From the NCBI RefSeq assembly GCF_036588685.1, contig NC_086376.1:94715630-94779629 (forward strand): DNA of 64,000 bases, in the 5' to 3' direction. Below are positions 8,335-57,233 of this stretch, piece after piece. The notes under the pieces were generated by a model, which saw nothing but the letters and a program-made list of their open reading frames with translations, did not search any database and was not told the DNA's origin. Both the position numbers and the translations under genes were made by a program. Source of the stretch: Mytilus trossulus. Taxonomy: Eukaryota. Numbering within the stretch: position 1 is the first letter of the stretch; each line of letters opens with the position of its first letter.

Positions 8335-8424
8335 CGTTAGAGATATAGGGGGAGGGTTGAGATCTCACAAACATGTTTAACCCCGCCGCATTTTGCGCCT
8401 ATCCCAAGTCAGGAGCCTCTGGCC
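8335..8424 (+). ncRNA. Putative twister, second copy of the same subfamily (element ~8330-8657)
   Basis: Nearly identical to 37108-37198, with one P4 mismatch (CCUA/CAGG) and two P5 mismatches. Confidence 0.72.
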
Positions 8425-10617: not shown

Positions 10618-11811
10618 AATCGTCCATATATGTCAATCCCTAAGATATATATTTATATAGGACATACATAGATATAGGAGGATGTTATATGAGTGCTCTT
10701 CATTCAAATAACAATTTTAAAAATATACAATTATAGGTCAATGTACGGCCTTAAACACGGATCCTTAGCTCACACCGAACAACAAGCTACAAGGGCCCAA
10801 AAATTACTAATGTAAAACCATTCAAACGAAAACCCAACGATCTAATCTATATAAAACAAACAAGAAACGAGATACACGTATCAATTACATAAACAAGCGG
10901 CAACTACTGTACATCAGATTTCTGACTTAGGACAGGACTGGTGCAAAACATATAGCCTTCGTACATTAGTGAGTTTTCTTTATTTTGAAGTCCCTGAGAT
11001 AGATAAGATATAAACAATCATTGAAATGAGAGTTATTGAGAGACATAAAATCATTCCTATATGTTAAAACAAACTTTAAGAACTTTGCAAAACGCTTTTT
11101 TTCTTTTTTCTCTGGATGAATTCCACCTAAACGTGCACAAGAATAAGCAAGAAAGTAGGTGTACACAATTGTTATATCAACTGTGTGCTGAATTAATAAT
11201 CCATCATATAAACTCAGCAAATATAATTTGACGTTCAGCAATTTCTGGATATCATTTTTGATGTATTCTTTTGGTTGAAATCACAAATCTAGGTGTGTAT
11301 ATTTTCGTTGACTCTTATTGCATAGAACAGATGTAAATTTAACGTGCAATTGAACAAACATTAAACATTTTGAATTTGAATATTTGAGGAATCTTTTCTT
11401 TGCTATATGGAAACTTGCAAATAAAACAATTCAAATACGTTTTCCTTTGTATTTCTTTATCATGTTGTATCATATAGCGCATAATACCTTTTAAAGCCTT
11501 GGCACTGGGATAAGTATACTTTAAAATCGGTTGTGTTTTGCTAAACTGTGTTATATTGTAGACCAAGAGGACTACATTACTTAAGATTATCTCATTTAAG
11601 AATACAAAACTCCTAATTGGGGAAAGGATGACCGGGTATACACTCTATTCATTTACCAAACAATACATCGAATAAGTCACACTTTGATCTGTGCTTACAT
11701 GAATACACAAGAACAATGCCTGCAAAGTCGAATGGAAACGTATTCGCAAATACTATTTATATAATATATGTGTAGATGTTTTGAGTGAATACTGATAAAA
11801 CTTAAACATAC

Positions 11812-11898: not shown

Positions 11899-13424
11899 CT
11901 GAAACAGTAATTGGCATCACTATCATTATTGCACAAAATGTATATGATAATTGAAATTGAGATAAAATACGAACAGCTCTAAAGCAACTTTAAAAATGCG
12001 CAGCAACTTGACCAAGAGACAAATAGTATCCTAAATAGTTGACTGTATTTGACAAGAATTTTCACCAATTTGTGTCGGTTCATTAATGCTCGACATCAAC
12101 ATACTTCAATATACAAAGCATATATATATATATATTCGACAAGAAAAGTATAGCCAAACACGTGAAAGGAATCTAGGCTATGCATTACTAAATTTAAAAA
12201 CATTTTTCCAGATTTAAAACAGCAAATTAAATAAGATACCATCCAGTTATTTTTATGTCCATAATTGCTGACCACTTGGGCTGGTGATGTCTTCAGAGAC
12301 TTATAGTCTTCAGCCGAGGTTTCGATGCAGTGATATTAACAACAGTTTTTTTTAAATAAATATGCACCAGATTAGCATTTCAACATTTAGGTTCTCTTCA
12401 ATGTACCAACGAATTAATGAGTCATTCAAAGAAAAGAAACCAAACACAATCAGAACATAAAAGGATGTCCGGATATCAATTACCTGCTTGGTACCAACAT
12501 AACTGACGTAATATATAATTGAGGGTTTGAGCGAGCTATAACATCCTGACTCCACTGACTTATACCACCCCCAGTTTTTTGGTAGGATTCGTGTTGCTCA
12601 GTCTTAAGATTCGTGTTGCTCAGTGTTTTGATTTTTTATGTTTTTCTTTTTCTTTTTGTCTTTGTCTTTTTTTCCATGTCATTTTAGTTCATTTTAGACT
12701 AATGTGTTTGAATGTATTATGATATATTTTATAATTATGACCATAAACTCATCATATATTTAGATGTTATAATAACGCGCGTTTCGTCTATAAAAAGGCT
12801 CATCAGATCAATGCAACTTCATATCAACTTTGAAGTGCTGACTACTGGGTAGATGATACAACCGGGAAGAAAATTTGTCTAAAATAGACGTGAATCATTC
12901 TGAAATCGTCAATGTATCTATTACGCGTCTATGTAATGCAGAACATATCGAACTGTCTGACTATAGACTAAAACGTAACTAATTTACTACAGCCAAATGA
13001 CTGAACAGTATTGAGTTTACCGGAGGAGATAAGTCTGAAAATTGATCAAAATACGACGTTAACTTAATAATTTATTTTTTAGTCTTAAAAGAGATGTCCG
13101 ATCAAAATGACCGTTTTAGACTAAAAATTGATATACGAGTAAAAGTAAATCTTATAACTTATTTGAAGACATTTGCCCTTGAAAAATAATGCAAAAGCAA
13201 AAGGACTTTGTTTTAAGATTTTAATCATAGATTTCACATAGCTCATATTGTGACTCTTTTACTTATAATGCCTATTTTGTTCCCACATCATTGTAAAATA
13301 ACGAAATTTGTTGCAAATGTCGTAAAGTGAGAGGTTTGGCAATATAAAACCAGTTTCAATCTACCATTTTCTACTTATGAAAATGCGTGTACCAAGTCAG
13401 GAATATGACTCTAGAAATTGACTA

Positions 13425-13740: not shown

Positions 13741-13804
13741 TGTTTAGTTCTCCTATTTATGACATTTTGGTCATGCATCATTGTCAATATAATGGAAAAT
13801 GATG

Positions 13805-13906
13805 TGACTGTCGTAAAAGTGAGAGGTTCAGCGCTATTAAACCAGGTATAATCCAGTATTTTCTACATTGGAAAATGTCTGTACCAAGTCAGGTATATGA
13901 GAGTTG
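13805..13906 (+). ncRNA. Putative twister, subfamily B (GAGGU/UACC pseudoknot), partly mutated
   Basis: ugacugucgua...GUGA GAGGU...UAAUCC...uauuuucu/ggaaaaug hairpin, UCUG UACC AA GU CAGG...uaugagaguug. A further copy lies at ~13313-13410. Confidence 0.65.
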
Positions 13907-15227
13907 TTGTCCGTTCGTTTGATGTGTTTTATCATTTGATTATGGACTTTCCGTTTTGTGATTTTATTTTTTAATAAATAGTTCATCACAAATGTAAGAT
14001 AAAAGATTTGCGAGAAAGTTTTGAAGACAAGCCATGCCATTTATTTTACATAAAAAAAATTTTTTTATATTTATATGATGCAAATCATCTCGTTATCATA
14101 TGCAAAACTATAGAAAACTGCAAATCATTTGTAATGACTTATTACATGTAAATTCATTTTAAAAATAACTCAAAGGAAAATTCAAAAACGAAAATTCATA
14201 TATCAAAAGGAAAAATCAATAGCTCAAACACATCAAACGAATGGTAAATATTGTCGTATTCTAGACTAGGCCAATGCATTTCATTTTGTAGAAATGAAAA
14301 GGTTGGTCTGTAGAAATTAGAATGTTGTGGCGTTTGTGTTTGTTAAAAGTTTCAAATCCTGTTCTGCAAAAAATCTTAAAATATGATGAGTCTTTTGCAT
14401 GCGTAACCCGAGTCCGGCTTATACAATTTGGATCATGGTACCTATGATGAGTTCATTCAAAATACGTTGCAGGAAAATGATTTCCATAGGGGCTTTTTAA
14501 ACATTCTAGTACCGTCTGTTCGTGTTTGAGGTTTTTTTCAACAACCGTGATAAAATGTGGCTTTCATTCTTAAGCCTTGCAATGAATATCTTGCTGACAA
14601 CGTCGTTTTCTTAAATATTATCAATCAAACGACGATCAAAATTACTCTGCAGCAAGGATGATTGTTATTCTTTTCAATTATTGACGGTGTGGTGTCACAA
14701 CTTGTAAATGCATAAACTGATGGCAAAACTGTACACAAGAAGGGTGTATTGCTGGTTATTGTCCAGGAACCGCAGTTTTTGTGTGTGTTTTATTATTAGG
14801 GAAAATGCACACATGAAATATGTTTGTGGAGACTATCACAAAACGACCCATTTTTTGTTTTTACTTTTAAAGGCGTTACAGCTATCATTGTAGTTAGAAT
14901 CATTCGCCATCACGCCTCTTCGTTTGTGCTGGGGAAATCATGCAACCCCTTCAGAGAATTTATTTTTGAAACAGTTGAGTGGAAAAACATGTATGTTAGA
15001 CTGTTTTTACTCAGCTGCGTATATGCAGCATCGAAACGGGATTAATCAATGAATTATAGACGGTTTTTTCTCGCTTTGACGTTTGTTCTATATTGTAAGG
15101 ATTTACCTTCTGATAGCAAAGTACAATTTGACAAAAATTTACATCGATATTTGAGCATATTATAAAAATATTTTCGTGTCGATTCTGTCAAAGATTTCAA
15201 CATTTTAACAAGCATTAGCAAAATCTG

Positions 15228-18510: not shown

Positions 18511-21500
18511 AAATAACAGTATTTACTAAGTTAAGTTAGATTTTATAGTTATTATTGTGAATTCTTCAAATACATTATTTACTAGGTTAGACTTGTGGTC
18601 ATTATTGAAATATATTTACAAAATACAATATTCGCTGTGTCAGACTTTAGGATTAATGAATTCAAATATGTCTGTTCTTTAGTTCCATTTACGTTACAGT
18701 GTCTAACAGTTCATGTATTGTATCATTGGTTCAGTTGACACTAGAGTTTTAAAAATTGCAATAGTTTTGGAATATGATAAAACGTTATGTAATAAAGTAA
18801 TGCACATTTTCATTCATAATTGTCCTTTGTTAGTCTTGTATATTCTTTTTTAATTGATTAAATTTATACGTTTAGTATGACACCCATTACACTAAACTGG
18901 TACACATTTTTGTTCAGGGGCCAGCTGATTGTTTTGCTGTGATGAAGACCAATTGGTGACCTTTGGCTTTTTTAAAACTCTATGGTCGGGTTGATGTCTC
19001 TTTGACACATTCCCCATTTCCATTCTCTATTTTATTGTTGGATGAAATGAGTGGAATATCAAATATACAAGCAAGCAAAATTTAAACTTTATTGTGTGAA
19101 AAGTATTCAAATATTTGTATTGTGTTCATAAATAAACTCATCAGAGATACCAGGACTAAATTTTGCATATACGCCAGACGCGCGTTTCGTCTACATCAGT
19201 GACGCTCGAATCCGAAAAAGTTAAAAAGGCCAAATAAAGTACGAAGTTGAAGAGCATTGAGGACAAGATTCCTAAAAGATTTGCCAAATACAGCTAAGGT
19301 AATATATGCCTGATGTAGAAAAGCCTTAGTATATAAAAAATATCAAAATGCCATTACACCACATGGCGATATTTGAAGTCAAGTTTTACGAAATTATACC
19401 AATGTGACATTTTAAATCTTGTTTTATCAATTACTAAGACAGTTAAACCAAAGTATAACGCAAACAATTCACCACACAATTTATTGTTTGAGTATTTATT
19501 ACATATTTTCTAACCGATGATGTCCGTTTGAGTACTAGTAAATGAAGAAACATCGAGTGTCCAAATAGCTTATAAAAAATGCATGACAGTAGTATACCGT
19601 TGCTTAATAGTCATAAATCAATTAACAAAAAACAAATCCGGCTTACAAATTAAACCCACTTATAAGAGGAAGCCACACAACAACAAAAACGTTGAACTGA
19701 TCACAAAAAAACAAGGACCAATATCCATAGACACCACAAAAGCGTGGTCCAATATTTTATTCTAAGTAATTTGGGCAGATTTTTAGTGGACCTATTGGCA
19801 GACTCATTACAAATGCGTTTTGACAATCATCCCGAATTAATTAAACTACTAGAAGTTACTGAAGAAAACGAAATACAAATTTGAAAAAAAGCCATATAAA
19901 AGTGATTGAAAGAAAACAATAAAGTTTTTAAAAGAATCAGTAGAGAAGTTTCAACTATTCGGAGTTAATTCATTGTAATATGCATGCAGTATCTCAATAC
20001 TTATTTTAGTCATTAAAAATAAGAAAACATATATATTTTCCTGTTATAAAAAAAAAGCACTAAATTTTCTATTTTAGCATTCCTATGACCAGTACCCTTA
20101 GTGGTATGTGCATCCAGCATCGAAAGTCTGTACTTATATAAAACATTTATTTTTTATTTATTTTAAAGTGAATACTCAAACCAGAAATCGACGGTACTAA
20201 ATAGTTTCAACTTTTAACGACCAGAAAAAATTGAAATATAGATATTATACTATAATTAAAATAAAACATTCTAGTCGTTTGTTGACTGTCCCTTTGATAT
20301 TTTTCGTCTCTCTTTTATCATGGTACCTGAAACTAGTTCAAAAGAGCCTTTTTTAAAGTCAGTTGCAGTATTATAGAGAACCAGTTCCAAAGAGGTCATT
20401 AATAGAATTAAACAAACAACCAATTTCCAAAGTGGTCATCTGTTGAACTGTAAAGACAACCAGTTTCTAAAAATGTCATTTCCGAGGATAATTCAATCGG
20501 AAAGTCCCTAATCACATGGCAAAATCAAATGACAAAACACATCAAACGAATGGACATCAACTGTCATATTTCTGACTTGGTACTGGCATTTTCAAATGTA
20601 GAAAATGGTGGATTGAACCTGGAGTTTAGAAACAACCAGTTTTTAAAGACGTCCTATGATTTCTTTTAACATCGATTAATACATTCACCTATTTCAGTAA
20701 AATTCATTACAGGTCAAGTACAATATCTTTTCTTTAGTTAACACTTATACCATGTTACCTATCAATCGTTTTGGAATACATATGATAAGGTATTTAATAA
20801 GGCTATTAAGATTTTCGTAACTTTATCATCTTTGATAGACGAGAAATTATAAAATCTTTTGTAGATATTACACAACCATACCATTTCTTATTATGTTCAT
20901 ATTCATAATGTAATAGGAATTTTAAAGACGAACTTTTACGGTTATTATAAGCAATCAGAGACACAATCTGCAATCAAGTAAAAGTAATGAAGTACACATA
21001 ATTCTAACATCACGTTTAAAGGTAACCTTCGGTTTGATCTGCTCATATTTCCATTCTATTTTTTTGATTCCGGATTGAAACAACAGTTTGGAACACGTTT
21101 AATAGATAAATCAAATAAAAAGAAATTAACAAAACAAGCATAAAACGATTCATAATTCGTTATAGTCTAGTAGTACAAATTAAAACTAGAACATAAGGTC
21201 AATTCAATAATGTTGTTGGTTCGTGTTGTTTAGTCTTTGGGTTTTCTATGTTGTATCTTCTGAACTATTTTTTGTCTGTTTGTTTTTTTATTTTAGCCAT
21301 GGCATTGTCAGTTAATTTTCGATCGATGAGATTGGCTGTCCCTCCTGTATCTTTCTTCCACATTTGGTGTATAAAGTAGGGTCGTTATGTGTTCAATAGT
21401 CGGATGTAAATAGTAGAATTTAAAATATTCAAGATGGCAGCATTGTTATCATACATGTAGCCAACTCACAACTTTGTTATGTGAAAAGTATGAAAACGTA

Positions 21501-22156: not shown

Positions 22157-25100
22157 ATTCAATACATTTTTTTAAAAACATTATTCACTGAGTTAGACAT
22201 ACTGGTAATTGCGATATTTTTAAAATACAGGTTTCATTAAGTTAGACTTTATAGTCATTATTGCGATTTATTTTCAAAATACATAATTCACTGTGTCAGA
22301 CCTTTTACACAGAATTTACATATGTCTGTTCTTTAATTCCATTTAAAATAAATGAATTCATTCGTCTATTTCAGAACAGTGTCAAACAATTCAAGTATGT
22401 TACCATTGGATTAGTTCACACTAGTACTTTAGATATAGCATGGTTTTTGAATATAATAAAAGTTATGCTATAAAGTAATACAGATTGTCATTCATTGATT
22501 GAAAAATAAAGAAATTATTATTTTTACTAAACTGAACTTTGTAGAAAATTGTGTCATTGACATTTATACCATATCGAATTATGCTAAAGAAAAGTGTATT
22601 ATAAATGACATATAGACGAAATTAAATGCTTGGAATCAGTTAAAAGAGAAACAATCTGCCATCAAGCAAAAAATGAGAAAGTACATATATGTTTTACAGC
22701 ACGATTAAGCTCAATCTTCGCTTTTATCTTATCGCTTTTCCATTTGATTTATTTTAATTTGGATTGAAACAAGAGGTTTGAACATATTTATTAAATAAAT
22801 CAAATTAAAAGAAAAGAAAACGAGACGATAAATCGATTCACAATTCGAAATAATCCAGTAGAACAAATAAAAACTAAAACATAAGGTCAATTCAACAATG
22901 TTGTTGTTTAGTAGGATCATTAAAGTGTCCATGGTAAAATGTAAATAGTAAAATATTCAAGCCGGTCGCAGATAACTATAGCCTAATTTAATCTTGAATG
23001 TGTGGAAAATAATCAATTGAGGGGACTACAGCTGGCCTCTTAAACAACAAGTGTATTAGTTCAATGAAAAGGGACGTCATTCTGAACTCAAAAACATATA
23101 AATGAACTAAAATTAAAACAACATATTAGACTGACATAGGCCAGGGTATCTTGATGTGGGACGGGCGCATGAATGCATCGAGGTTCAAAATGTTTTGTGC
23201 GATAGCAACCCCTATCTTAACATCAAGCCAATGTAGTTTAAACAAACACATAGCAATACACACAGTAAAACTCAGCTTAAGATGAGTCCGATTTGAGGTC
23301 AGAAAAGGTTACAAAAGAAATTAAGTAAAATGGCAATGAAACATAAATTAAAAAAGGACTACATGCAGTTACTGATATGCCAGGTCCAGACCATAATTAA
23401 ACTGATTGAAAGAATATGTCTAAAACTATCGAACAGATGACTTTAACATTATCATCGATGATCTTAGTGAAATAATGTCAGTAGTATTTGAAAAATAATG
23501 CCCAAGAATAGGATATCAATTCTGAGTTTTCTACCTAATATGCAAATGCTACTATTATGATGCAAAGTTGACTGTCCATCTGGTATCTTTCGCCCCTCTT
23601 TTAAGATTAAAAAATTCAGATTATCTTCATTGTCGTAAGCAATAATCTCTCTTCATCACAGCTGACAGTTTTTGAATGAATATCACAATTGATATAGGAC
23701 TCTTAACTGTATTTTTGTTCTTTTATATTTCAAATTGTATGTAATAATTGCGATCGAAATGTGAGGTATTGCCTTTAAACCGGTACATAAAATAAAAGGA
23801 ATATGAGTCTGACCTATACGGATTGTAAAAAAAGACTTGAGAAAATATTTGTTTGTCCATTCAAGATCCGTCCAACAAACCTTATAAATATTTCGTTCCT
23901 TATCAGATCAAGCTCAATGATTATGGCAATGTAAAGAAACCTTTTTCTGGAATTGATTTATTAAACATGGTAATCTTTTTCCTGTCCTTGTTGTGTATAT
24001 CTTTAGTCGTCCTTTTTGTGAAAAAAAACACGTTTTTCTTTCCAATTCTTGTTCAAATTGAAGTGAAAAATGGAAAGATATAAGCAATTAAAATTGTAGA
24101 AAAAAAGTGTTATCGACCTAGTGCTATCAAATGAAATAATTATATCGTGAGTGTATTAGTAATTATATATAAACAGCTGTGTAATAGTCGTAACTCGATT
24201 AACCGAAAATAAAATCAGGGTCTCAATTCAAAACCAAAGAAAACACATCAACTACAACAGAAGAATATGATCACCTAAAATGAACAAACTTAAAGGCAAC
24301 GAAAGTGTGGTCCAATATTCCATTTTAAGTAGATGCGTTCGATTAGGATCTTAGTTGAAAAGAATTTCAGTTTGCCTGCCTATTGTCAATTGTTTTCATT
24401 AGGCAATCCAACAATAAAACTTGCCAAAAACTATAACCAATAGTACTTAACATTTCGTTAAACAACATCAATAAACAAATTAAAATTCACACATTTTATA
24501 ATCAGGATATTGATATTCAAATCAATATTACCTGTTTGCTTTGTTTTTAATGTACATCAATTTACAGTTCAAATCTATTCTTGTCGAATGTCTGATGTGA
24601 TGAACTATATTTTTTCGAAATATATTTCAAATTTTAAACGATGTTTCTGTTATAATAAATACTGATAATCATAATTTTTAATTAAGAAGGTACTTCATTA
24701 AACACTTCATAAAAAATAAACCAATCAACTTATTCTAGGTCAAAGAAATAAAAATTCCCTCGAGTAATTTAAATACAGTTAAGAAAACTTTAATGGGATT
24801 GTAAATTCTAATAGAACCGACGGTTCAATCAGTTTTGACAAGAAAAAGCTATTTCTGCGTCAATTAAAAATCTGTTTTCTAGTAACATATCGGAGAACAT
24901 TTTGTATTTAATTATATCTGTTACAGATCTTTTATTTTCGAATACATCAGTTTTTATTAATGCAAACGTTTTCTTCGAGTTTTATAAGTCTTTAAATGTA
25001 TAAACTTTGTTTTAGAAAAATGTGCAATATTAACATTATTCTACGTATTTTGATTCTACATTTATTCGGTTGTTTCCCTTTTACACATCAATCTGATAGG

Positions 25101-28500: not shown

Positions 28501-29112
28501 TAGTCTCACTATGTTTGGAAATTGAGCGGTCATTTATTGGCTCTTTTTATACTCTATTCTTTCTGTCATAAATGTCTGTACATTGCCCCTTCTTTTCGCT
28601 TGAGGATGAGTTACAATACGACAAGCTAAAAAATTGGGAATATTTCTTTACTGATTGTCACAGTTCATATATTTAGTTTTTAGTATATCTTATTCTCAAT
28701 TGTTTTTGAAAAAAGTCACTTAAAACATCAAGGGATACTCAAATTTAGTATTTTTGATTGGTTTTTATTTGTTCTTACGTAATTGTTAGTTTTGAAATGT
28801 TGTTCCAAATTATATGGTTTTATTCATTTTTTATTACTGAATTATTATCATTTTATTTACTTAAGTTTTAGATTCTATTTTTGAGTATTTGCGTATATGT
28901 AACGTTACCTCATATAAATTGTAATTATCCCCGTTTTTTAGTTTGATGACGTTAAGCCTTTGATGAACGGTATGTTGTCTTGAGCTTATATTCATCTATG
29001 ATTTTGAACATACTAACAACTAATGTAAGTTTTGAACATACTAACAACTAATGTAAGTTTTGAACATACTAACAACTAAGTTAAGATTTGAACATACTAA
29101 CAACTAATGTAA

Positions 29113-31571
29113 AAGAGGGACGAAAGACACCAAAGGGACAGTCAAACTCGTAAATCTAAAACAAACTGACAACGCCAAGGCTAAAAACGAAAAAGACAAA
29201 CAGAAAAACAATAGTACACATGACACAACATAGAAAACTAAAGAATAAACAACACGAACCCCACCAAAAACTAGGGGTGATCTCAGGTGCTCCGGAAGGG
29301 TAAGCAGATCCTGCTCCACATGCGGCACCCGTCGTGTTGCTTATGTGAATACAAATCCGGTAAATAGTCTAATTCGGTAGGTCAAATTCATGAAAGGGAA
29401 GGGGATTGTAGTTACGACGTAAGGAACATATCCGATATAATTTGTGAAACGGTTATTCCATAACGGTCAACCAACTCGTGATGGCGTCCGTAAAATTTAC
29501 GAAGGGATGATTTCAACTTCACCATTTGGAACTCTTGGTTTAATAGCTTCCTTGTGAGCAGTAACCCTCTATCAAGAAAATCATGATAGGAAATGCAAGC
29601 ACGGGAATATCGTATCAATTGGGAGATATATACCCCGTATGCAGGTGCTGCTGGAATGTTGCTACTTAGAAATGGAAAGTTCACAATTGGAAAGCTGAAA
29701 TCATATCTTTTGTCGTAAAGTTTAGTCTTCAACCGACCCTCATTGTCAATTTCTAGATGTAAGTCAAGATATGAAGCCGACTTAACTGTATCTGTAGTAT
29801 CCTTTATCTCCAATTCGATGGGATAGATGCGATCCACATAGTCACCAAATTTTGAATTGTTTAGTGAAAGAACGTCATCTATATAGCGGAAAGTAGAGTT
29901 AAAGGATATTGCTAACTTCTTATCTTTCTTCCTAAGAAGTTCCTGCATGAAGTCAGCCTCATAATAATAAAGAAACAAGTCAGCAAGTAGAGGGGCACAG
30001 TTTGTTCCCATTGGGATGCCGACAGTCTGTTGAAAAACACGTCCTCCGAACGTAACAAATATGTTGTCAATCAAGAAATCAAGCATCTTGATAATATCGG
30101 TTTCAGAGAATTTTTTGTTTGAATCAGAATGGTTCTTTACAAAGTATGATTTATCCCTCCCTAAGACAAGATACTTGTATCTACGTTGGCCATTCTTTTT
30201 TATGAAGCAAAGTAATACCAACTCTTTTAATTTGTCTTTTAGTTTGGAATGTGGAATACTTGTGAAAAGAGTAGAAAAGTCAAATGTTTTAATACTGTTA
30301 CAAGATGAAAGAGAGTTAGATTGTATGTACTCTAAAAGATCTTTGGAATTTTTAAGTATCCACATCTGATTCACGCCACCTCTAGAATAGGCAGTTTCAC
30401 AATAACTTTGAAGCCCGTCTTTGATTGCTGATAAAATGGATGTTAATAATTTAGAAAGGGGTTTCGTGGAGCACTTGGAAGACCCAGTAATATACCGTTG
30501 TTTGTAAGGACACTTATGTAGTTTAGGTATCCAATACAGTGATGGAAGATCCAGTTCTTCATCTTTGGTTGAAATACCAAAGGAACAAAGAACAGACCTA
30601 TGATTATCCAGGATTTCCTCTTTGGTAAGTGTAGTGAGGGTATATGTTGTTTCCAAGTGAATTGTCTATACCTAATTCGTTTATCAAGCAATTAATGTAA
30701 TGACTTTTACAGATAAAAACGATGTTATTTGGGGCTTTGTCTGCGGGGACAACAACATATTCATCATGGAGGTCAGATAGGTGTTTAGTAACGTTTGGAT
30801 CTTTGAAGATTGACGTAGCATGGGCATTGATGGACCCATTCAGTTTCTTAATTCTGATTTGTATTAACGACCTCACTGCCTTAATCCATTCGGATAGAGT
30901 GTCTACGTCTTCCTTCTCGCGCTTAGCCCATTGCCTGGCATAATCCTCGACTGAATCCATCAAAATTTTAAAGTTGTGTTTTCCAATTGATGGATTTAGG
31001 CTCACGATATTTCGGACCTTTCGATAACACGTTTCGTAGAGAAGTGTTATTAACAATGTTTAGGTCGCCGGTAATAACGTGGCCAGCAGGATTGTGAATT
31101 GGGAAATAGCACAAGTGCAATCAGGAGGTTTAGACTTGAAGTCGTCAATATCGAGATCCTGAAAAACGCGTTTGTAATTGAAAATTTTAGTTGCAATAGG
31201 TTTGGTATAGGTATAAGAAATTATTGGTACAGACTGGTCTTTGAAATAAGGAGGTATTTTCGATTGAACTAATTTATGATGAAGGATATTGCCTAGATTG
31301 ACGCCATCGAGACCTTTGTTGGCAAAGGAAAGATTTAGAAAAGATCTTTTCTCTTTTTCATCTTTTCCAATGCGAACTGGCTTGAAAAGTCTGTGACTAG
31401 CAATATCCGAAATTATAGCTTGTAGTTTGTATTGGTTTGAATGAGGGTTTGTTACAGTGGATTCCAAACATAAATTGAACAGAGAATGAAGTTTTGAAAG
31501 GGGTAATGAATACAGTTTCGTGCGAATGTGATGAATACCTAACGGTTTTTGTATGCATGGCAGTAAGTGTA
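29113..31571 (-). mobile_element. 5'-truncated Penelope-like retroelement (Naiad/Chlamys-type) inserted in a 28-bp satellite
   Basis: Frameshift-split ORF (31397-31597, 31060-31467, 30604-31056, 29412-30656) with [24 protein letters not shown] and LYWIPKLHK motifs. No C-terminal endonuclease. ~300-nt 3' UTR ends in cctcttt. Apparent TSD AATGTAA at 29106-29112 and 31572-31578. Confidence 0.9.
29412..30656 (-). CDS. Reverse transcriptase domain of the Penelope-like element (disrupted upstream by frameshifts)
   Basis: RT motifs FDFSTLFTSIP, QTVGIPMGTNCAPLLADLFL, FRYIDD, ASYLDL, then KLYDKR..FPIVNFP thumb region. Confidence 0.92.
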   Translation of the reverse strand: METTYTLTTLTKEEILDNHRSVLCSFGISTKDEELDLPSLYWIPKLHKCPYKQRYITGSSKCSTKPLSKLLTSILSAIKDGLQSYCETAYSRGGVNQMWILKNSKDLLEYIQSNSLSSCNSIKTFDFSTLFTSIPHSKLKDKLKELVLLCFIKKNGQRRYKYLVLGRDKSYFVKNHSDSNKKFSETDIIKMLDFLIDNIFVTFGGRVFQQTVGIPMGTNCAPLLADLFLYYYEADFMQELLRKKDKKLAISFNSTFRYIDDVLSLNNSKFGDYVDRIYPIELEIKDTTDTVKSASYLDLHLEIDNEGRLKTKLYDKRYDFSFPIVNFPFLSSNIPAAPAYGVYISQLIRYSRACISYHDFLDRGLLLTRKLLNQEFQMVKLKSSLRKFYGRHHELVDRYGITVSQIISDMFLTS

Positions 31572-35830: not shown

Positions 35831-37107
35831 CCACTTGTTCTTTTATGGAGCATGTTTTCTCATTCTTCACTGTTAACAAAATACATAAACATCACAGAAC
35901 AAACGAATATATTGATATCTATAAATACAAGTCCGCAAAAACATGCTGCTAGTGAAGTGAGACTCAGACAAAAAGTAGACAGGACAATGTTTGATCACGT
36001 TCATTTCATATAAATCTAAAATGAAATTCAAGTGATCATTTTCAAGTCAGATTCACCTAAAACTGGCTTAAACATGAAACATGGAATGACTAAAGGTTTA
36101 CAACACTTTTTGTCACTACGGAGGAAATGAGGACTGATTTTTGACTTTCTGACATATCATGTTTAGTGGAGATTTTTTAGTTTTGAGGTTCGACCAAAAA
36201 CATAAACATCCATTTTATTACTGTGTGCAATTGATAAATTGATAAAAATCGTTTCCACCGATGATGATTGCTCACTTTTTCTATTACTTCAAAACTTCAA
36301 ATAAATATTGTTTATACGTTATTAATTATTTTCATGTACACTAACGAGGACAAAACAGGGTTTCTTATTATTATGTTGACTTTTTCAATACAATCAAAAT
36401 AATGATAAAACAAAATTCATTTCAAGCAGTGTAATTTTGAAAAGTCAAGGTATAATGAATGACATCAATTCCAGTGTGCATGACAAGTTTTACCGGGACA
36501 ATTTAATCAGCTATGCTCGAGATTTATTGATTTCCTAAACATTGAAGCATCAATAGTTCTTACAGATAAAATGTTCACATCTGGTCTATCTCGAAGCCAG
36601 ATTATAATAAACAAGGAATTATGTAACGTGATTTAACTTTGTCCTCTTTTATTTAATTAAAGTGGATGTAACGAATTGAGCAACAATACGGCCTTGAACA
36701 ATGACATAAGCACTGTATCTTAAAGTCTACCATAAATGGCCTCGATATGAAAAATATGAAACAATTTAATGAGAAAACAAATCTATTAAAAAACCATTTT
36801 ACGAAATACAAATATGACAGACATAAACAAGTGACAACTACTGAATTACAGGATTCTAACTTGAGACAGGCACATGTATAATATGTCGGGTTAAATAATA
36901 CTCTCTTGTCCTTGAACAGTGGTGTAATGGCACAGTATAAGGACAAAATATAAACAGCAACTCAAAGAGGCTTAATCATCAGATCGAAACATGTATATCC
37001 GATTAAGATATATAAACACTGATCAAATAATTTGATTTGAAGGTTACATGTATATTGTTCAATCTAAAATTCAGCATTAAGGCAATTTAAACAAAGATTA
37101 CTACATT

Positions 37108-37198
37108 GGTTAGAGGTATAGGGGGAGGGTTGAGGTCTCACAAACATGTTTAACCCCGCCGCATTTTTGCGCCTGTCCCAAGTCAGGAGCCTCTGGCC
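37108..37198 (+). ncRNA. Putative P5-type twister ribozyme heading a ~315-bp dispersed repeat (37101-37420)
   Basis: P5 GGUUAGAGGU(37108-17)/GCCUCUGGCC(37189-98). P2 GGGG(37121-24)/CCCC(37154-57). GA-GGG(37125-29) pairs with loop CCC(37177-79). UAA at 37151-53. GC(37158-59) pairs with GU(37182-83). P3 CGCA/UGCG. P4 CCUG-UCCCAAGU-CAGG-A. Confidence 0.8.
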
Positions 37199-39283
37199 TT
37201 TGTTAGTCTTGTATTATTTTCTTATGTACAATTTGGAAATTAGTATGGCGTTCATTATCACTGAACTAGTATATATTTGTTTAGGGGCCAGCTGAAGGAC
37301 GCCTCCGGGTGCGGGAATTTCTCGCTACATTGAAGACCTGTTGGTGACCTTCTACTGTTGTTTTTTATTTGGTCGGGTTGTTGTCTCTTTGACACATTCC
37401 CCATTTCCATTCTCAATTTTAATTATATTTTGAGACTTAATTTGCTTATTCAAAAACTGTCCTTGATTCAATCACACGATACCGTTGTGGTTATGAGATT
37501 CTCTAATCACTTGATGTCTTTATTTTACACAAAAAAGCAATTCCTATAAAATTCGGTAGGACCAATTCGTTTATAAATGATTGAATATATTCATTGGTAA
37601 ATTAGTCTCACAATTCATGTGGGTATTGAACAAATGTTATTTTGTATTTCCTTTCATTGGCAGTGAGAGTCTTGTAATAACATGATCTTTGAAATATTTA
37701 AGGTGATTTAAATATCGATGACTACAATTATCAATGACAATAAAGTAAGTTATAAAAAATAAATGAAACTACAAGTCTTTGATAATTTTGCATTCACTCA
37801 TCCTAGTTCAATTAGAATAACACAAATAACAAAAAAGACAATGGTATCACAAGCATACACTCAAATTACGAAAATGTTCAATTCTATAAATGCTTAATAA
37901 GATTTCAGATAAATAAAATTCACTTGGAATAAAATTTTCTATAACAGTTACATTGATTGCTAATCTGTTCGATGTCACAAGTATAGAATTTGATTGATAA
38001 GCAGAGTAGATTCATAGTGTTCCAACAACAAATGTGCCGTACCCTACTTTTACTGTGTTCAAAGATGAGCTGTATATGATAACATTTAAATGACAGACAA
38101 ACAGACAAACAATAATACTCCTTCAGCTGACCTTAGATATAAAATGTGCACGGAAAATTAAAAAAAATAATCGACAACTCAATTTTCTTATCTATAATAA
38201 ACAACAAAACTCTTTACGCGAAAAAGTATTTCAATTATCGGAAAGTAATCAAGCTGTCCAAACTGTTGAATTAACCTGATTAATTAAGTATGTTATGTCT
38301 TACATAAAATAACCTAAGCGGAAGACACACTGTGTTATTATGTAATTGATGTCACCATTCTGTCTTTAATACCAACAAATGTCGTTAAGGAATTGATGAC
38401 TTGATTATTTTAGGAACATAATGCTCTATAGTACTACATTTTGCCTACACGAGCCAGTGCTGGTAGTTTTCGCAAACTAATGTCACCTCAACAAATACCT
38501 ACGATTTCCTTTAGTAAACTCAATTTGACATTAAGCAAACAAAAATATAAATACCATAACATTCAATTACTATGTATTTTAAATACTTGTACATCTTACG
38601 ATATCGATACAAAACGATTTCCATTTATGAATTAGTGTATGGTTCTCTTAATTCTGTGTTCAAATAATATGTTTAGGGAAATATATTTGTTAAAATATTT
38701 GATTTACCTTGATTTTAATATTTCGAAGTATGTGGTTTATCTTTTTCCTAAAATATGTGGAAAAGTTAGTGGTTTATCTTACTCCTAAATTATGCGTAAA
38801 AGTGAATGATTATGCTTGATCCTAAAGTATGAATTAAGTGTATGGATTATCTTGATCCAAAATTATGTGTAAAAGCGTATGGTTTATCTTGATTCTAAAT
38901 TATTAAAAGGATAATGTTTATCTTGATCTTTGATATCCCAATCACGCTTGGACAAAGAACCCCCTTAAACCTCAGAAATTATTAAAAAAAATGTGAAAGT
39001 CATAGTATGATCGTGGTGGTCGTAATTAGGGCGAGCTGATGTCGTTATGATGCAGAGATCAAAGACCAACTTTGAACATGATCAAAACATTCGTAATGTT
39101 TGCCGTCTTTAATACGACTTTACGTTCTATACGCAAAAATTTCAAAACGACTTTCTGTTGATATGAAAACGGCGGATGCACTAACATCTACTTGTTGTTA
39201 AATAATGGACATACATAGCAAACCTACTTCTGCAATCTTCAATCCAACTGCTGTGTATCGAATTGGCTGATCAGGGTAATTTT

Positions 39284-41765: not shown

Positions 41766-41869
41766 CGACTGTCATACAAGTGAGATGTTATAATAGCAAT
41801 AAAATCAGTTTTAATCCACCATTTTCTACATAGGAAAATGCCTGTACAAAGTCAGCAAAATGACAGTTG
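41766..41869 (+). ncRNA. Putative twister, subfamily B
   Basis: P5 CGACUGUCA/UGACAGUUG. GA-UGU(41784-88) pairs with ACA(41846-48). UAAUCC-AC. P3 CAUUUUCU/GGAAAAUG. P4 CCUG..CAGC (one mismatch). Confidence 0.65.
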
Positions 41870-41989
41870 TTATCCAATAGTTTAATGTGTTGAGCTTTTG
41901 ATTAGGGACTTTCCGTTTTGAATTTCCTCGGAGTTCAGTATCTTTATGACTTTGACTTTTTCTTACTTTATGAATTGAGAATATTAGAA

Positions 41990-44152: not shown

Positions 44153-46140
44153 TGTATCTCCCTCATGCAAAGTTCTGATTCCTTTTACGAATTTGACTAT
44201 ACTTTTTGGACCCTTTGGATTATAGCTCTTCATCTTTTATATAAGCTTTGGATTTCAAATATTTTGGCCACGAGCATCACTGAAGAGACATATTTTGTCG
44301 AAATGCGCGTCTGGTGCAAGAAAATTGGTACCGTTGATTTTATTATTATTATTTATTATTTTATTGTTTGCAATAGTGTGAATTATTTTATATAATATGA
44401 ATGTTCTTATCCTGGGCATACAAACAATGCCGTATTTGGCAAAACTTTTTCAACTTTTGATCTTCAGTGCTGTACAATTTTGTATTGTTTTCGTCACTGG
44501 TGAGTCTCGTGTGGACTAGACGCGTTTTTGGCGTATTGAATTTTAAACCTGATGCTTTTTGTTATCTATTAATCATGCTTTTATGTCTTATATGTTCTGC
44601 TTTTTATTTGTATTGTAGTCCTGTAATATTTTGTTTTCATTTCAATGTTATATTTAACTGTGCCATTAAAGTGCGAGGTTTGGCATGCCTTAAAACCAGG
44701 TTCAACCCACCACTTTTATTCCCCTTTAAAAGTGTCCTGTACCAAGTCAGGAAGATGGTCATTGTTATAATATTGTTCGTTTCTGTGTGTGTGTTGCATT
44801 TTAACGTTGGGTCCTTTCTGTTTTCTCTTGTTTTTGAGATAAGACGTGGCACGGTACTTGTCTATCCCATATTTATGTATTTGGTTTTGATTTTATATTT
44901 GTTATTCTCGTGGTGTATTGTCTGTTGCTTGGTCCGTTTCTGTGTGCTGTTGCGTTTCGGTGTTGTGTCGTTGTTCTCCTCTTATATTTAATGCGTTTCC
45001 CTCGGTTTTGGTTTGTTGCCCCGATTTTGTTTTTTGTCCATGGATTTATGAGTTTTGAACAGCGGTATACTACTGTTGCCTTTATTTATTACTACCACTG
45101 GGTCGATGCGTCTGCTGGTGGACTATTAGTCCCCGAGGGTATCACCAGCCCAGTAGCCAGTACTTCGGTACTGGCATGAAAATACGGATTTTTTGTGTTA
45201 TTAAAATTTGCTGTAACAAAATATTAGAAATTATTATAAATTAAGGAATGTATCTCCCTCATGCAAAGCTCTGATTCCTTTTACGAATTTGACTATACTT
45301 TTTGGACCCTTTGGATTATAGCTCTTCATCTTTTATATAAGCTTTGGATTTCAAATATTTTGGCCACGAGCATCACTGAAGAGACATATTTTGTCGAAAT
45401 GCGCATCTGGTGCAAGAAAATTGGTACCGTTGATTTTATTACTACCACTGGGTCGATGCCTCTGCTGGTGGACTATTAGTCCCCGAGGGTATCACCAGCC
45501 CAGTAGCCAGTACTTCGGTACTGGCATGAAAATACGGATTTTTTGTGTTATTAAAATTTGCTGTTACAAAATATTAGAAATTATTAAAAATTAAGGAATG
45601 TATCTCCCTCATGGAAAGCTCTGATTCCTTTTACGAATTTGACTATACTTTTTGGACCCTTTGGATTAGAGCTCTTCATCTTTTATATAAGCTTTGGATT
45701 TCAAATATTTTGGCCACGAGCATCACTGAAGAGACATATTTTGTCGAAATGCGCGTCTGGTGCAAGAAAATTGGTACCGTTGATTTTATTACTACCACTG
45801 GGTCGATGCCTCTGCTGGTGGACTTTTAGTCCCCGAGGGTATCACCAGCCCAGTAGCCAGTACTTCGGTACTGGCATGAAAATACGGATTTTTTGTGTTA
45901 TTAAAATTTGCTGTTACAAAATATTAGAAATTATTATAAATTAAGGAATGTATCTCCCTCATGCAAAGCTCTGATTCCTTTTACGAATTTGACTATACTT
46001 TTTGGACCCTTTGGATTATAGCTCTTCATCTTTTATATAAGCTTTGGATTTCAAATATTTTGGCCACGAGCATCACTGAAGAGACATATTTTGTCGAAAT
46101 GCGCATCTGGTGCAAGAAAATTAGTACCGTTGATTTTATT
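44153..46140 (+). mobile_element. Tandem array of 350-bp hammerhead-containing repeats (non-LTR retrozyme), interrupted by a ~745-bp insertion
   Basis: Unit markers at 44153, 45249, 45599 and 45949 (period 350). Each unit has CUGAAGA-GACA/UGUC-GAAA-UGC gcRucug GUG-CA at 44280, 45376, 45726 and 46076. Retrozymes of about this size are known from mussels. Confidence 0.85.
44661..44761 (+). ncRNA. Putative twister, subfamily E
   Basis: GA-GGU(44675-79) pairs with ACC(44741-43). CAACCC-AC pairs with GU(44746-47). P3 CACUUUUA/UAAAAGUG. P4 CCUG/CAGG-A. P5 CCAU/AUGG. P2 is weak. Confidence 0.65.
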
Positions 46141-54692: not shown

Positions 54693-54801
54693 CGACTGTC
54701 ATACATGACAAGTGAGAGGTTTAGTTAGTTATAAAACCAGGTTTAATCCACCTTTTTCTACATAAGAACATTCCTGTACAAAGTTAGGAAACCGACAGTT
54801 G
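54693..54801 (+). ncRNA. Putative twister, subfamily B, mutated (element ~54540-54908)
   Basis: P5 CGACUGUC/GACAGUUG, GUGA GAGGU, UUUAAUCCACC, CCUG UACA AA GU UAGG A. One pseudoknot mismatch. Confidence 0.6.
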
Positions 54802-57233
54802 TTATCCATTTGTTAGATGTGCTTGAGATTTTGATTTTGCCATTTTATTGCGGACTGTCAGTTTTGAGTTTTTTCCTCAGAGTTGGTATTTTTGTTATTT
54901 CACTTTTTTATATAGCATTATCTTCTAAATGAGATATTTTGTAACATAGACGATGAATAAAACTTTATTTAATGGGGACAGATATAGAAGGTTTCAAGGT
55001 GCGTGAATGTTTTAATTGAGCAAAAACCATCCCTTGAATTAAAATATACTACAATGTACTAAAGAACACGGAAAGACAAACAACATCCAGGAAACACTGT
55101 ATAAAAATATTACTCTTAACAATCATGACCCTACTATACATTATACATCATAAATAACCCTTAAGGTATGATTTAAAAGTAAATAATAGTGTTGTTCAGA
55201 AATTAATTATATCCTGAAATAGTCTACTAAATAGCGTATAACATGACGAACGTGCGATATCAAGAATTCTTTAATATATCGTCTGCTGTCGGCGGTGTTT
55301 ATAAGAATCTGCAACACCAAGGAATCATTAGTTTGCGTAATAACACCTTATAGTATGGTCATTATAGTAAATGATCAAGTTCAGTCCGTCATTTTAAAGA
55401 TAGCAAACAAGTTCAGTACCAAGACAGGAATTATCCATATGACAATTGTTTTTCGTTCTTCGATGTTTTTCAGCTTTTGATTTTGCTATTTGATAACGGA
55501 CTTTTCGTGTTGATCTTGCTTTGGACTTCGGTATTTTTGTTATTTTACTATTTATTAAACCAAATTGTTTAAAGAAAATATATATTGTGTTATCATTAAT
55601 AACTGTATTTTGTTTGGAAAATATATAGATATATATTTTTATTACTTTTCATTTATATATGAGCAAAAATTACTCTGATTTAATTTTAAATTAGTGTTTA
55701 CTATAAATGTGTGTGATCTCCATTTTTTTTTCTATTTATCTTAAGTTTAGATTGAAAGATGACTTCTTATATTTTTATTTTACATGTTGATAATCAAATT
55801 TCTATCTCTATTACTAAAAAAAATGAAAACATGTTATGAATTCCATTCATCCGAGGTACTTTTTCTGGATTTAGCGTCAGTTTTGATTTAGGGAGTTAAA
55901 ACTTTTTTTTTAATTTCAGAAATAAATGTACAAAAAGGCCACCATTTGTTAATACCTAATTCTTAACGCAACATTATCCTTACTAGAGGAAGGGGTGAAT
56001 TGTCGGTTTATTTCATTCTGTTCCTTTGTGTCAAAGTAGCGATAAATTTCATCATTAGCTTAACAGTTTATAAAGATCACTCAGCCTCATACACAAAGAA
56101 TCAAAAGTGTCTTCATCTTTTTTTTTCAAAACTACATATCAATGGTATTAATTATTTATTTCAGAAGATGTGTTTTTGTTCTTGCTTTTAAAATTCTTAT
56201 ACATTATTTGAGTCAATGTTTATGAAGTGATGTAGTGTTATAACATCAGATTATCGGTAAAGGGATGTGGAGAAACATTCTTAGGCTGTGATATGTGTTG
56301 AGGAGGTTAGAAAGTTAATTCCTAAACTATTGAAGATCGATGTTTGTTAGGCTTCTTGTCAAATGTATAATTGAAAAACATGTCTCATTAATATATACTT
56401 CGTGAATTTCAAGTTTTGTCATCAACTTTTTGTCTTATGTATTTGAACTTGTATTTCCTATAATATACTTAATTAAATATTCAGTGCTTCGGTACTGACA
56501 TGACTTTTCTTCTTCTTTTGAATTTGATTGACTTTTTTTCATTTTAAAAATTTATGACGATTGAATGGCATTATCCGTGCTTAATAAAGTAAAAACATTT
56601 AATTTTCAGAAAAGAAAACTATTTCCTAACTAAAGGTAGATATTGAAAAATACCCATCAATATCAACAAAATGCATAAATGAAGAAAAAGGTTGTACTGT
56701 CGTGTGATTTATGCGTTAAATAAAATTGAGAATGGAAATGGGGAATGTGCCAAAGAGACAACAACCCGACCATAGAAAATACAACAGCCGAATGAAATTT
56801 TTATATTTGATAAATCATTTTGCTTGTGCGTAATAGAAGTAAATAAAATATCAGAATTCCTACATGCCTGTTCGAAAAATAGAATGACTCCGAAATGTTT
56901 TTCTTTATCTAACTATAGGGGTGATAAAATACCCGAATGTTTTCAGAATTGACGTATATCTGAACAATACATCATGACAAAAAAAATCTGAATAACAGTT
57001 GGCAAAAAAAAATCCTTCATCTTGCTATTTCACATGACAAATATATCAAAGAAGATGTGGTATGATTGCCAATGAGACAACTATCCACAAAAGACCAAAA
57101 TGACACAAACATTTTAAAACAACTAAAGGTCACCGTACGGCCTCCAACAATGAACAAAGCCCATATCGCATAGTCAGCTATAAAAGGACTTCTGACAATA
57201 ATAAGAATACTTTTAAAAATAATTCAATCTTAC

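Follow-up and report, generated by a model that had tools for sequence, protein, structure and literature searches.

The window, the whole 64-kb stretch of DNA that was analysed, contains a 313-nt repeat whose sequence at 37108-37198 has exactly the order of parts of a type-P5 twister-like motif, and the parts read as the sequence-only reading had given them (Table 1). The 5' strand of P5 is followed by AUA and then by the P2 strand GGGG, and a 21-nt insert separates the GGG of pseudoknot T2 from the U^AA triplet at the predicted cleavage site. The loop of P4, L4, holds the partners of both the T2 and the T1 strands. The motif of this copy (37106-37205) is the sole fully intact one in the window.

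Table 1. Parts of the twister-like motif, the element copy that carries it, and related copies in the window.
Feature	Position	Strand	Basis or remark
Family-A 3'-end copy, about 320 nt, approximate boundaries	37101-37424	+	Alignment to longer genome copies from about 37102
P5 5' strand GGUUAGAGGU	37108-37117	+	Pairs with 37189-37198; MFE folding, covariation
P2 3'-side strand GGGG	37121-37124	+	Pairs with 37154-37157; Rfam alignment
Conserved GA	37125-37126	+	Matches GAGgG consensus of Rfam Twister-P5
T2 pseudoknot strand GGG	37127-37129	+	Pairs with CCC 37177-37179; compensatory variants
First palindrome h1, UGAGGUCUCA, with a G.U pair	37131-37140	+	Occupies position of P1 3' strand
Second palindrome h2, AACAUGUU	37143-37150	+	Directly 5' of cut-site U
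U^AA, predicted scissile bond 37151/37152	37151-37153	+	Aligned to UAA of Rfam Twister-P5
P2 5'-side strand CCCC (37154-37157), then T1 strand GC	37154-37159	+	T1 pairs with GU 37182-37183
Optional P3 hairpin CGCA-UUUU-UGCG	37160-37171	+	MFE folding, covariation
P4 hairpin CCUG/CAGG, loop L4 UCCCAAGU	37172-37187	+	Rfam alignment
P5 3' strand GCCUCUGGCC	37189-37198	+	MFE folding, covariation
3' tail of the element to its fixed 3' end	37199-37424	+	End common to genome copies; equals L057 tandem junction
Second family-A 3'-end copy	8333-8655	+	94% identity over 321 nt
Older family-A-like 3'-end copy	1420-1723	-	Twister 5' half lost or diverged
B-type twister-like motif, loop UACCAAGU with GAGGU	44659-44767	+	R2 match
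Similar B-type copies	13317-13416, 13804-13912, 41768-41872, 54704-54804, 2183-2296	+	R2 matches
Similar B-type copy	20552-20655	-	R2 match
Decayed A2-like copy (tail cagtagttg...)	36839-36918	-	R2 match
Similar A2-like copy	10903-11014	-	R2 match

Alignment to longer copies indicates that the 313-nt repeat represents the 3' end, truncated on its 5' side, of a Penelope-like element (PLE) of the Naiad clade that is autonomous, about 4.02 kb long and often arranged in head-to-tail tandems. The element has roughly 10,000 copies in the genome. Most of these run upstream of 37108 through conserved sequence and into the reverse transcriptase (RT) ORF, and they form a ladder of variable 5' truncations with a fixed 3' end. 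The truncation pattern had been noted from the window already; the accompanying view of the motif as the head of the repeat does not agree with the upstream continuation. The window copy is 92-93% identical to the 3' UTR of the units at locus L057, a tandem array of 4,023-nt units that are 99.6% identical and have one twister motif each, and a pseudo-LTR-like duplication is present at L046. The motif lies in the 3' UTR, where it is separated by about 310 nt from the stop codon upstream of it and by about 240 nt from the 3' end, and in tandem or pseudo-LTR arrangements it is also found upstream of the ORF.

The L057 frame (5683-8691) is broken by four in-frame TGA codons alone, and a SECIS_1 element (32.8 bits) is located 52 nt past its stop codon. 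GIY-YIG motifs (IIYLLT-U-NKPGCGIQYVGETGR...ELNWI...GLN) are present N-terminal to the RT in the same frame, which also contains the CxC motif as CNCSNS and the DKA motif as PADKAANNIIIV. In the homologous N-terminal region of two related loci, L122 and L121, Pfam GIY-YIG scores 29.6 and 26.2 bits, respectively (cut-off 22.6). The ORF interrupted by selenocysteine codons was searched as the pieces between them; no Pfam RT or GIY-YIG match was obtained in the family-A pieces, which for GIY-YIG is attributed to the splitting of the domain by the UGA codons. A PDB sequence search with the ORF gave no match, and an Atlas search gave only RT/HTH_animal leads. The GIY-YIG, CxC and DKA motifs, the RT, and the four UGA codons with a SECIS suggest that this is a selenoprotein-encoding Naiad PLE; the four codons are probably read as selenocysteine with the help of the SECIS just after the stop. 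The GIY-YIG region, a UGA in the place of the CCHH finger's first Cys, CxC, DKA, a unit of 3.4-4.4 kb, tandems, a SECIS right after the stop and very high copy number in bivalves are all shared with the clam and spider Naiad selenoprotein PLEs (Craig et al. 2021, PMC8557442). The body length of 3.4-4.4 kb, tandems or pseudo-LTRs, 5' truncation and lack of a canonical hammerhead likewise place the element among the Naiads, an assignment drawn here from motifs, unit length, tandems and truncation.

The Rfam Twister-P5 model (RF02684) aligns over 58 of 58 model positions to 37121-37187, with 23.0 bits and E=0.0027 for the 106 nt searched, which would be E of about 1 at window scale. GAGGG, UAA, GC and GUCCCAAG all agree with the Rfam consensus, and every conserved position is matched. 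The score is below the gathering score of 37.6 bits because stem P1 is absent and is represented in the alignment by a 21-nt local end; the proposed check against a twister covariance model thus gave alignment over the full length, but a score under the threshold. The related family A2 also aligns over the full model with all conserved positions (20.6 bits, again below gathering), and the Rfam twister-P1 model gives 23-24 bits against a gathering score of 67.2. No copy tested reaches Rfam gathering, and no Rfam family does so in the 64-kb window or in 10 kb of the L057 tandem array. A genome scan with RF02684 gave no match among the 79 of 26,711 candidates that were scored. A loose structural descriptor was unspecific, with about 0.8 matches in shuffled windows. 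MFE folding recovers P5, P3 and P4 and also gives a competing helix, GGGUUGAG/UUUAACCC, in which the cut site is buried.

In twisters about ten nucleotides of L1 and L4 are strongly conserved, the cut falls between a U of lower conservation and a conserved A, and an active-site guanine takes part in catalysis (PMC5408937). By alignment to the consensus, G37125 corresponds to this guanine, and the earlier assignments of G37125 and of U37151-A37152 agree with the twister consensus. The GA is present in 11 of 11 distinct relatives among the descriptor matches, the descriptor itself having required it.

To compare relatives, 80 related retroelement loci with 38-98% RT identity were fetched from marine metagenomes. 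Downstream sequence of 600 nt or more was available for 40 loci; in 28 of these the motif is downstream of the ORF and on its strand, 70-930 nt past the end of the RT protein match. The motif is the sole part of the 3' UTR that can be aligned at 66-70% RT identity, and its placement with respect to the ORF is retained in lineages as distant as 42% RT identity. Distant loci (40-47%) mostly have no detectable motif.

P2, P3, P4, P5, T1 and T2 all covary in 40 distinct sequences. Of all cells, 91.1% are paired, compared with 65.3% in shuffles, and the covariation score is 0.568 compared with 0.172 when shuffled; it was reached by 0 of 500 shuffles, and slid controls gave 0.045-0.065. All 10 pairs of P5 have changed on both sides across relatives, as have 4 of 4 pairs of P2 (GGGG/CCCC, GGGA/UCCC, GGGC/GCCC, GUGU/ACAC) and 3 of 4 pairs of P4 (CCG/CGG, GCAG/CUGC, GCUG/CAGC), and all 4 pairs of P3 covary. 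The proportions of paired cells in P2 (84.7%), P3 (95.6%) and P4 (93.8%) are inflated because the nested helices of alignment A3 were fitted to the model. The pseudoknots T1 and T2 were outside the model used for aligning. T2 is paired in 92.0% of cells, by GC, AU and UA types, with the compensatory variants AGG/CCU, AGA/UCU, GGA/UCC and GGU/ACC; T1 is paired in 90.8%, with GU 15, AU 10, CG 4 and GC 1 at its variable position. The conserved twister nucleotides are kept among the relatives, with changes in T1 and T2 compensated, and the triplet at the cut site is UAA or CAA. The middle of P2 holds a non-standard pair in about one third of the relatives, and in some T2 is down to two Watson-Crick pairs. 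At the level of sequence, this comparative evidence settles the fold as one of the twister class and supports the earlier suggestion of a genuine type-P5 motif tied to PLE retrotransposition.

The slot of the absent P1 has the layout UU, a palindrome of 8-10 nt (h1), a short linker and a palindrome of 6-9 nt (h2), and in the relatives P1 is always replaced by two palindromes of variable sequence. In most copies h1 reads UGAGAUCUCA; at least 14 different perfect palindromes of 8-10 nt occupy its position among the relatives. The h2 variants AACUAGUU, AACGUU, AACCGGUU and AACCaGGUU are all still self-complementary. The number of palindromic nucleotides is 13.7, compared with 7.6 in shuffles. The P1 region folds with about 0 to -3 kcal/mol as a monomer and -11 to -23 kcal/mol as a homodimer, and the energy gain on dimerisation is -13.4 kcal/mol compared with -6.4 in shuffles; these RNAcofold energies pertain to the P1 region. 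P1 is dispensable for twister cleavage, and a twister from which it is missing cleaves at a rate near that of the wild type (PMC5408937). Its replacement by two palindromes suggests that the ribozyme works as a dimer.

The core pattern has 552 matches in the genome, and its reversed control has 3. Exact 16-mers across the cut site number 9,783, compared with 9,468 just downstream, and the similar counts indicate that no class of copies begins at the cut site. Retrotransposition of the 3' cleavage fragment, with copies starting at A37152, was rejected on these counts. Since copies span the cut site, their templates were intact there when copied, which fits resealing or low activity of the monomer and equally fits no cleavage.

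In the window, the covariance model R2 has 14 matches at E<=1, in about three groups, and BLAST finds further fragments with only the tail; the previous estimate of more than 15 copies in at least four subfamilies was roughly right. The second family-A copy scores 91.1 bits at 8333-8431, where one substitution (CCUA) breaks a P4 pair. The B-type copies score 18.8-59.8 bits, and their P2 is interrupted midway by a C.U, C.C or C.A mismatch. No motif was found with the window's own PLE ORF (29436-31563, minus strand).

These data are probably best explained by a type-P5 twister in the 3' UTR of Naiad PLEs, with a core kept by compensatory changes, that cleaves itself, acts as a dimer and releases unit-length RNA. 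The RNA would cut itself between U37151 and A37152. Two copies, in neighbouring tandem units or in separate RNAs, would pair through h1 and h2, the dimer being the active form, and cuts at successive twisters would yield unit-length RNA with 5'-OH and 2',3'-cyclic phosphate ends. This RNA could then be ligated or circularised and reverse transcribed. Hammerheads of the other PLE clades have been proposed to process tandem transcripts in this way. A more tentative version, somewhat less likely than not to be correct, is that Naiad PLEs use an obligate-dimer twister. In that model h1:h1 and h2:h2 helices would bridge two cores, and family-specific palindromes would serve as a pairing code; neighbouring tandem units or two RNAs would be coupled, and the unit-length RNA set free by the cuts would be ligated or circularised and then reverse transcribed in a rolling-circle-like manner.

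A twister-like fold could instead be kept without cleavage, as a structural signal that might, for instance, guide RNA dimerisation, packaging, RT recognition or template switching. The palindromes of dimerisation type in place of P1 fit such a role, as do the retrotransposed copies that span the cut site intact, the imperfections of P2 and T2 in some lineages and the very slow cleavage of PLE hammerheads in vitro (PMC6765202). It is nevertheless unlikely: the guanine of GA, the adenine that follows the cut and CCAAG of L4 are kept across lineages, and structure alone needs none of these active-site nucleotides. The near wild-type rate without P1 also stands against it, and natural twisters tolerate many imperfections (PMC11662667).

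Quite improbable is the proposal of the sequence-only reading that the copies are short, non-autonomous SINE-like elements with a twister at the 5' head and RT borrowed from neighbouring PLEs. Many window copies are indeed short (about 100-330 nt), full-length parents were traced mainly for family A, and hammerhead retrozymes are regarded as PLE derivatives without autonomy (bioRxiv 10.64898/2026.07.22.740005). The family-A copies, however, are continuous upstream into the RT ORF with their ladder of 5' ends, the motif is in the 3' UTR of full elements at the 28 metagenome loci, and B-type motifs adjoin complete Naiad ORFs in L121 and L122. A tRNA-like head was looked for and none was found, nor do copies begin at or close to the motif more often than elsewhere. 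The 313-nt copy is better described as a 5'-truncated end of the autonomous 4.02-kb Naiad PLE, and the different tails, taken for SINE subfamilies, belong to different Naiad families. A chance resemblance to twisters inside an ordinary repeat hairpin might be suspected from the sub-threshold Rfam score, the E-value at window scale and the descriptor matches in shuffled windows, but it is scarcely credible given the covariation of several helices and pseudoknots in 40 distinct sequences, the conserved position relative to the ORF and the excess of pattern matches over the reversed control. As far as sequence analysis goes, the comparative data refute it.

Among known systems the closest is twister type P5 (RF02684; Roth et al. 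2014, reviewed in PMC5408937), with which the Naiad motif shares P2, P4, optional P3, open P5, T1, T2, GA-GGG, U^AA, GC, L4 UCCCAAG(U/C) and the order of parts of the P5 permutation. Type P5 has P1, whereas the Naiad motif is without it and below Rfam gathering; in many copies L4 ends in GU or GG instead of GC, and some have mismatches in the middle of P2. The twister variants of Schistosoma mansoni Perere-3/RTE (PMC8501958; PMC7761336) are likewise twister-class ribozymes used by a retrotransposon. They are 5'-terminal and of type P1, with part of P1 supplied by the target site duplication, and trim the 5' end of the LINE transcript, whereas the Naiad motif belongs to type P5 and lies within the 3' UTR, with its cut about 290 nt from the 3' end. 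The non-LTR hammerhead retrozymes of mussels and other animals (PMC7229834) share ribozyme-bounded tandem units, proposed circular RNA and PLE machinery; retrozymes are short, non-coding and bounded by hammerheads, whereas the unit here is a coding PLE with a twister.

The hammerheads in the pseudo-LTRs of canonical PLEs (Cervera & de la Pena 2014; Lunse et al. 2016; summarised in PMC6765202) differ in ribozyme class and PLE clade. They have in common with the Naiad motif a location close to the 3' end or pseudo-LTR of a PLE that forms tandems, a helix reduced to a palindrome, implying a dimer, and likely the same role in processing tandem transcripts. The loops of stem III in PLE hammerheads are palindromic, and these ribozymes function as dimers (PMC6765202). 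The canonical clades always bear hammerheads, and Naiad, a clade with an N-terminal endonuclease, and Chlamys are reported without canonical ones, an absence from which the ribozyme was suggested to be dispensable or merely parasitic (PMC8557442). Craig et al. (2021) searched Naiads for hammerheads only and reported none; twisters are not mentioned (PMC8557442). No paper linking twisters to Naiads was found among the searchable literature after that study. That Naiads have a twister in the corresponding position, preserved through compensatory change down to about 42% RT identity, argues against a dispensable ribozyme. Self-cleavage may, on this view, be a step that the PLE life cycle requires and that two unrelated ribozyme classes provide, each with one helix reduced to a dimerisation palindrome. 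A dimeric Naiad twister, if real, would be a convergent counterpart of the dimeric hammerheads in other PLE clades. With a twister in Naiads, a second biological setting would be added to that of the Schistosoma RTE, and thousands of twister-like sequences in bivalve genomes that are missed by Rfam thresholds would be explained. The palindromes that replace P1 offer a natural dimeric twister architecture for bench testing.

The repeat copy at 37101-37424 (+) contains a twister-like motif, and every sequence part that the sequence-only reading had assigned to 37108-37198 was found by direct reading. Rfam returned no match at gathering (acceptance) thresholds anywhere in the 64-kb window. In a search limited to 37100-37205, all 58 positions of the Twister-P5 model aligned to 37121-37187 and all of its conserved consensus letters were matched, with a 21-nt local end in place of P1 and P3 as an insertion. 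The alignment is end to end, but its score (23.0 bits, E=0.0027 for that 106-nt-scale search) lies below gathering (37.6), which was never attained in any copy scored, including those of A2, a second family. Minimum free energy folding recovered P5, P3 and P4, with an alternative central helix in which the cut site is buried. The Rfam match and the fold alone are suggestive and not significant at window scale.

Parts of the twister-like motif and its copies in the window. Copies are matches to the covariance model R2; P2 to P5 are twister stems.
Feature	Position	Strand	Remark
P5	37108-37117 with 37189-37198	+	GGUUAGAGGU with GCCUCUGGCC; read from sequence
P2'	37121-37124	+	GGGG, after linker AUA
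GA	37125-37126	+	
GGG	37127-37129	+	
Insert	37130-37150	+	21 nt
U^AA	37151-37153	+	predicted cut site
P2	37154-37157	+	CCCC
GC	37158-37159	+	
P3 hairpin	37160-37171	+	
P4	37172-37187	+	CCUG/CAGG, loop UCCCAAGU; then A37188
Family A	37106-37205	+	intact
Family A	8333-8431		one P4 mismatch
Family A	1624-1723, 23132-23231	-	decayed
B-type	44659-44767, 13317-13416, 13804-13912, 41768-41872, 54704-54804, 2183	+	
B-type	20552	-	
B-type	94		fragment
A2-like	36839, 10903	-	remnants

The core pattern has 552 matches in the M. trossulus genome, against 3 with a reversed control, and A2 and several minor families share the core while differing in their P5, P3 and insert sequences. An RT alignment was used to retrieve 80 Naiad-like loci of 38-98% identity from marine metagenomes, and all those with enough upstream sequence have a common N-terminal region. 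A descriptor scan found the motif in 11 distinct forms, on the ORF strand and downstream of the ORF. The variants were GGGG/CCCC, GGGA/UCCC, GGGC/GCCC and GUGU/ACAC in P2; CCUG/CAGG, CCG/CGG, GCAG/CUGC and GCUG/CAGC in P4; GGG/CCC, AGG/CCU, AGA/UCU and GGA/UCC in pseudoknot T2; and GC/GU, AC/GU, GC/GC and UC/GG in pseudoknot T1. P5 sequences are unrelated from locus to locus. Of the 40 loci having at least 600 nt past the RT match, 28 contain the motif according to covariance models R1 (family A only) and R2 (built on the R1 matches), in every case 70-930 nt downstream of that match.

Pairs were counted in 40 distinct aligned sequences and compared with 500 shuffles and slid controls. Standard pairs occupy 91.1% of cells, a value biased high for the nested helices, which were fitted by the aligning model, versus 65.3% in shuffles (none of the 500 reaches 91.1%) and 32-43% in slid controls. 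The covariation score is 0.568, versus 0.172 and 0.045-0.065, respectively, and 24 of 27 pairs have changes on both sides. T1 (90.8% paired) and T2 (92.0%) were unpaired columns in the aligning model and therefore provide an independent check. The observation is real, and the assignment as a putative ribozyme, already made in the sequence-only reading, is well supported by covariation across several helices and both pseudoknots. At 66-70% RT identity nothing in the 3' UTR but the twister core can still be aligned. Mid-P2 holds a non-standard pair in a third of the sequences, and in one group T2 has only two Watson-Crick pairs; these imperfections and the sub-gathering Rfam scores would account for the motif having escaped routine annotation and searches for hammerheads alone.

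The motif had been taken for the head of a SINE-like element, a reading that did not survive comparison with genome copies. In 30 fetched copies conserved sequence continues upstream of 37108; 5' ends form a ladder, 3' ends coincide, and longer copies reach an RT ORF with YLDD and DKA motifs. ARAGORN found no tRNA-like head. Locus L057 (M. trossulus, C10:32727000-32736999) consists of 4,023-nt units arrayed head to tail, with 99.6% identity and one twister per unit, and spacings of ~4.02 kb recur on several chromosomes. At L046 a twister-bearing region of ~600 nt flanks the ORFs on both sides, resembling a pseudo-LTR. The twister of the family-A unit (L057 9004-9097) lies ~310 nt past the stop and ~240 nt short of the element 3' end; this makes the window copy a 5'-truncated 3' end, starting by chance 7 nt before P5. 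In two metagenome loci (L076:3567-4505, L083:3387-3533) the N-terminal coding region of the next unit begins ~0.9-1.1 kb past the twister, so the tandem layout is common to other Naiad lineages.

L057 5683-8691 is a single frame whose sole interruptions are four TGA codons (5848, 5941, 5974 and 7249). It holds IIYLLT-U-NKPGCGIQYVGETGR...ELNWI...GLN, which is a GIY-YIG pattern, CNCSNS (CxC), PADKAANNIIIV-U (DKA) and the RT. The TAA stop is followed, at a distance of 52 nt, by a SECIS_1 match (32.8 bits, E=1.5e-4). Pfam GIY-YIG was not detected in family A, whose ORF was searched as UGA-split pieces, and exceeds the threshold in L122 and L121, whose ORFs are uninterrupted, over the homologous N-terminal region. 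Naiads, a clade of Penelope-like elements (PLEs), are defined by an N-terminal endonuclease, CxC, a change of DKG to DKA, a body of 3.4-4.4 kb and the formation of tandems and pseudo-LTRs, and are dominant in bivalve genomes; clam selenoprotein Naiads have UGA at the first Cys of a CCHH finger and a SECIS right behind the stop (Craig et al. 2021, PMC8557442). Family A matches this clade in its N-terminal GIY-YIG pattern, CxC, DKA, tandems, pseudo-LTR, in-frame UGA and SECIS past the stop.

Selenoprotein-type Naiads, previously known from clams and spiders, appear in the M. trossulus genome and in many marine-metagenome contigs. In-frame TGA codons are the sole ORF interruptions at L057:5683-8807 and also in L071, L075, L084, L088, L090 and L101. 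They fall at conserved Cys positions: in the CCHH finger, in CxC in relatives, and at the residue following DKA..IIV. SECIS_1 matches past the stop codons score 26.6-32.8 bits across loci.

The stretch from GGG to the cut site has one plan in every lineage: UU, h1, a linker, h2 and N^AA. The h1 segment is a perfect palindrome of 8-10 nt with at least 14 different sequences among lineages (UGAGAUCUCA, GGGAUCCC, UGGGCCCA, GGGCGCCC, GCAGCUGC, ACGCGCGU and GGCAUGCC are examples), the linker is A-rich (2-5 nt), and h2 is a palindrome of 6-9 nt of the form AAC..GUU (AACAUGUU, AACUAGUU, AACGUU, AACCGGUU, AACCaGGUU). Palindromic nucleotides number 13.7, versus 7.6 in shuffles. The segments are unable to form hairpins (monomer folding energy 0 to -3 kcal/mol), and intact copies have homodimer energies of -11 to -23 kcal/mol over the region, with a mean dimer gain of -13.4 kcal/mol versus -6.4 in shuffles. 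Pairing of h1 with h1 and h2 with h2, either between separate RNAs or between units within one tandem transcript, would yield two antiparallel helices of similar length with a ribozyme core at each end, spaced approximately as by a normal P1. The P1-less Naiad twister is probably dimeric. In PLE hammerheads stem III is very short and its loop is palindromic, and these ribozymes are thought to cut in dimeric form, helped by the tandem layout (PMC6765202); palindromes in place of one stem and tandem layout make the parallel close. Loss of P1 leaves twister cleavage close to the wild-type rate (PMC5408937).

The motif most likely self-cleaves between U37151 and A37152, with G37125 most likely the conserved active-site guanine. 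Cutting would convert tandem or read-through PLE transcripts to unit-length RNA, which could be resealed or circularised and then reverse transcribed; the same processing role has been proposed for PLE hammerheads (PMC6765202). The genome holds 9,783 occurrences of exact 16-mers across the cut site and 9,468 of a 16-mer 34-49 nt downstream. By these counts no class of copies starts at the cut, and the 3' fragment itself is not a favoured template. They fit resealing or low monomer activity, and fit no cleavage equally. A 16-mer 25-40 nt upstream, TAGAGGTATAGGGGGA, occurs 6,409 times, about a third less often than those at or after the site (~9,500-9,800), which may reflect G-run instability or 5' truncation within the ribozyme.

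RTE/Perere-3 elements are known to have twisters at their 5' end (PMC8501958, PMC7761336), canonical PLEs carry hammerheads and Naiads were reported without them (PMC8557442). In a 2024 survey, bivalves are one of the groups with predicted twisters, and no transposon context is given (PMC11662667). In the full-text literature searched, which leaves out most subscription journals, no twister is reported for Naiads or for any PLE, and the text consulted of a 2026 PLE/retrozyme preprint does not mention one. What remains is a P1-less twister as the putative resident ribozyme of Naiad PLEs.

R2 has 14 matches in the window at E<=1, and BLAST also found tail-only family-A fragments. B-type motifs have the loop UACCAAGU, GAGGU and a compensated T2 (ACC with GGU), and those at L121:113-217 and L122:3394-3497 adjoin complete, uninterrupted Naiad ORFs. 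Their T1 is kept as AC with GU, their P2 has three C and a mid-helix mismatch, and CAA stands at the predicted cut site. A more distant Naiad-like ORF lies at 29436-31563 (-), with 42% RT identity; the twister models have no match in its 3' UTR (~28900-29436), where a G+C-rich segment (~29245-29343) may be a different RNA element. In the family-A tail, between twister and 3' end, a G+C-rich, apparently structured block (37274-37350, ggggccagctgaaggacgcctccgggtgcggg...) is conserved among copies and could serve the RT in recognising the 3' end.
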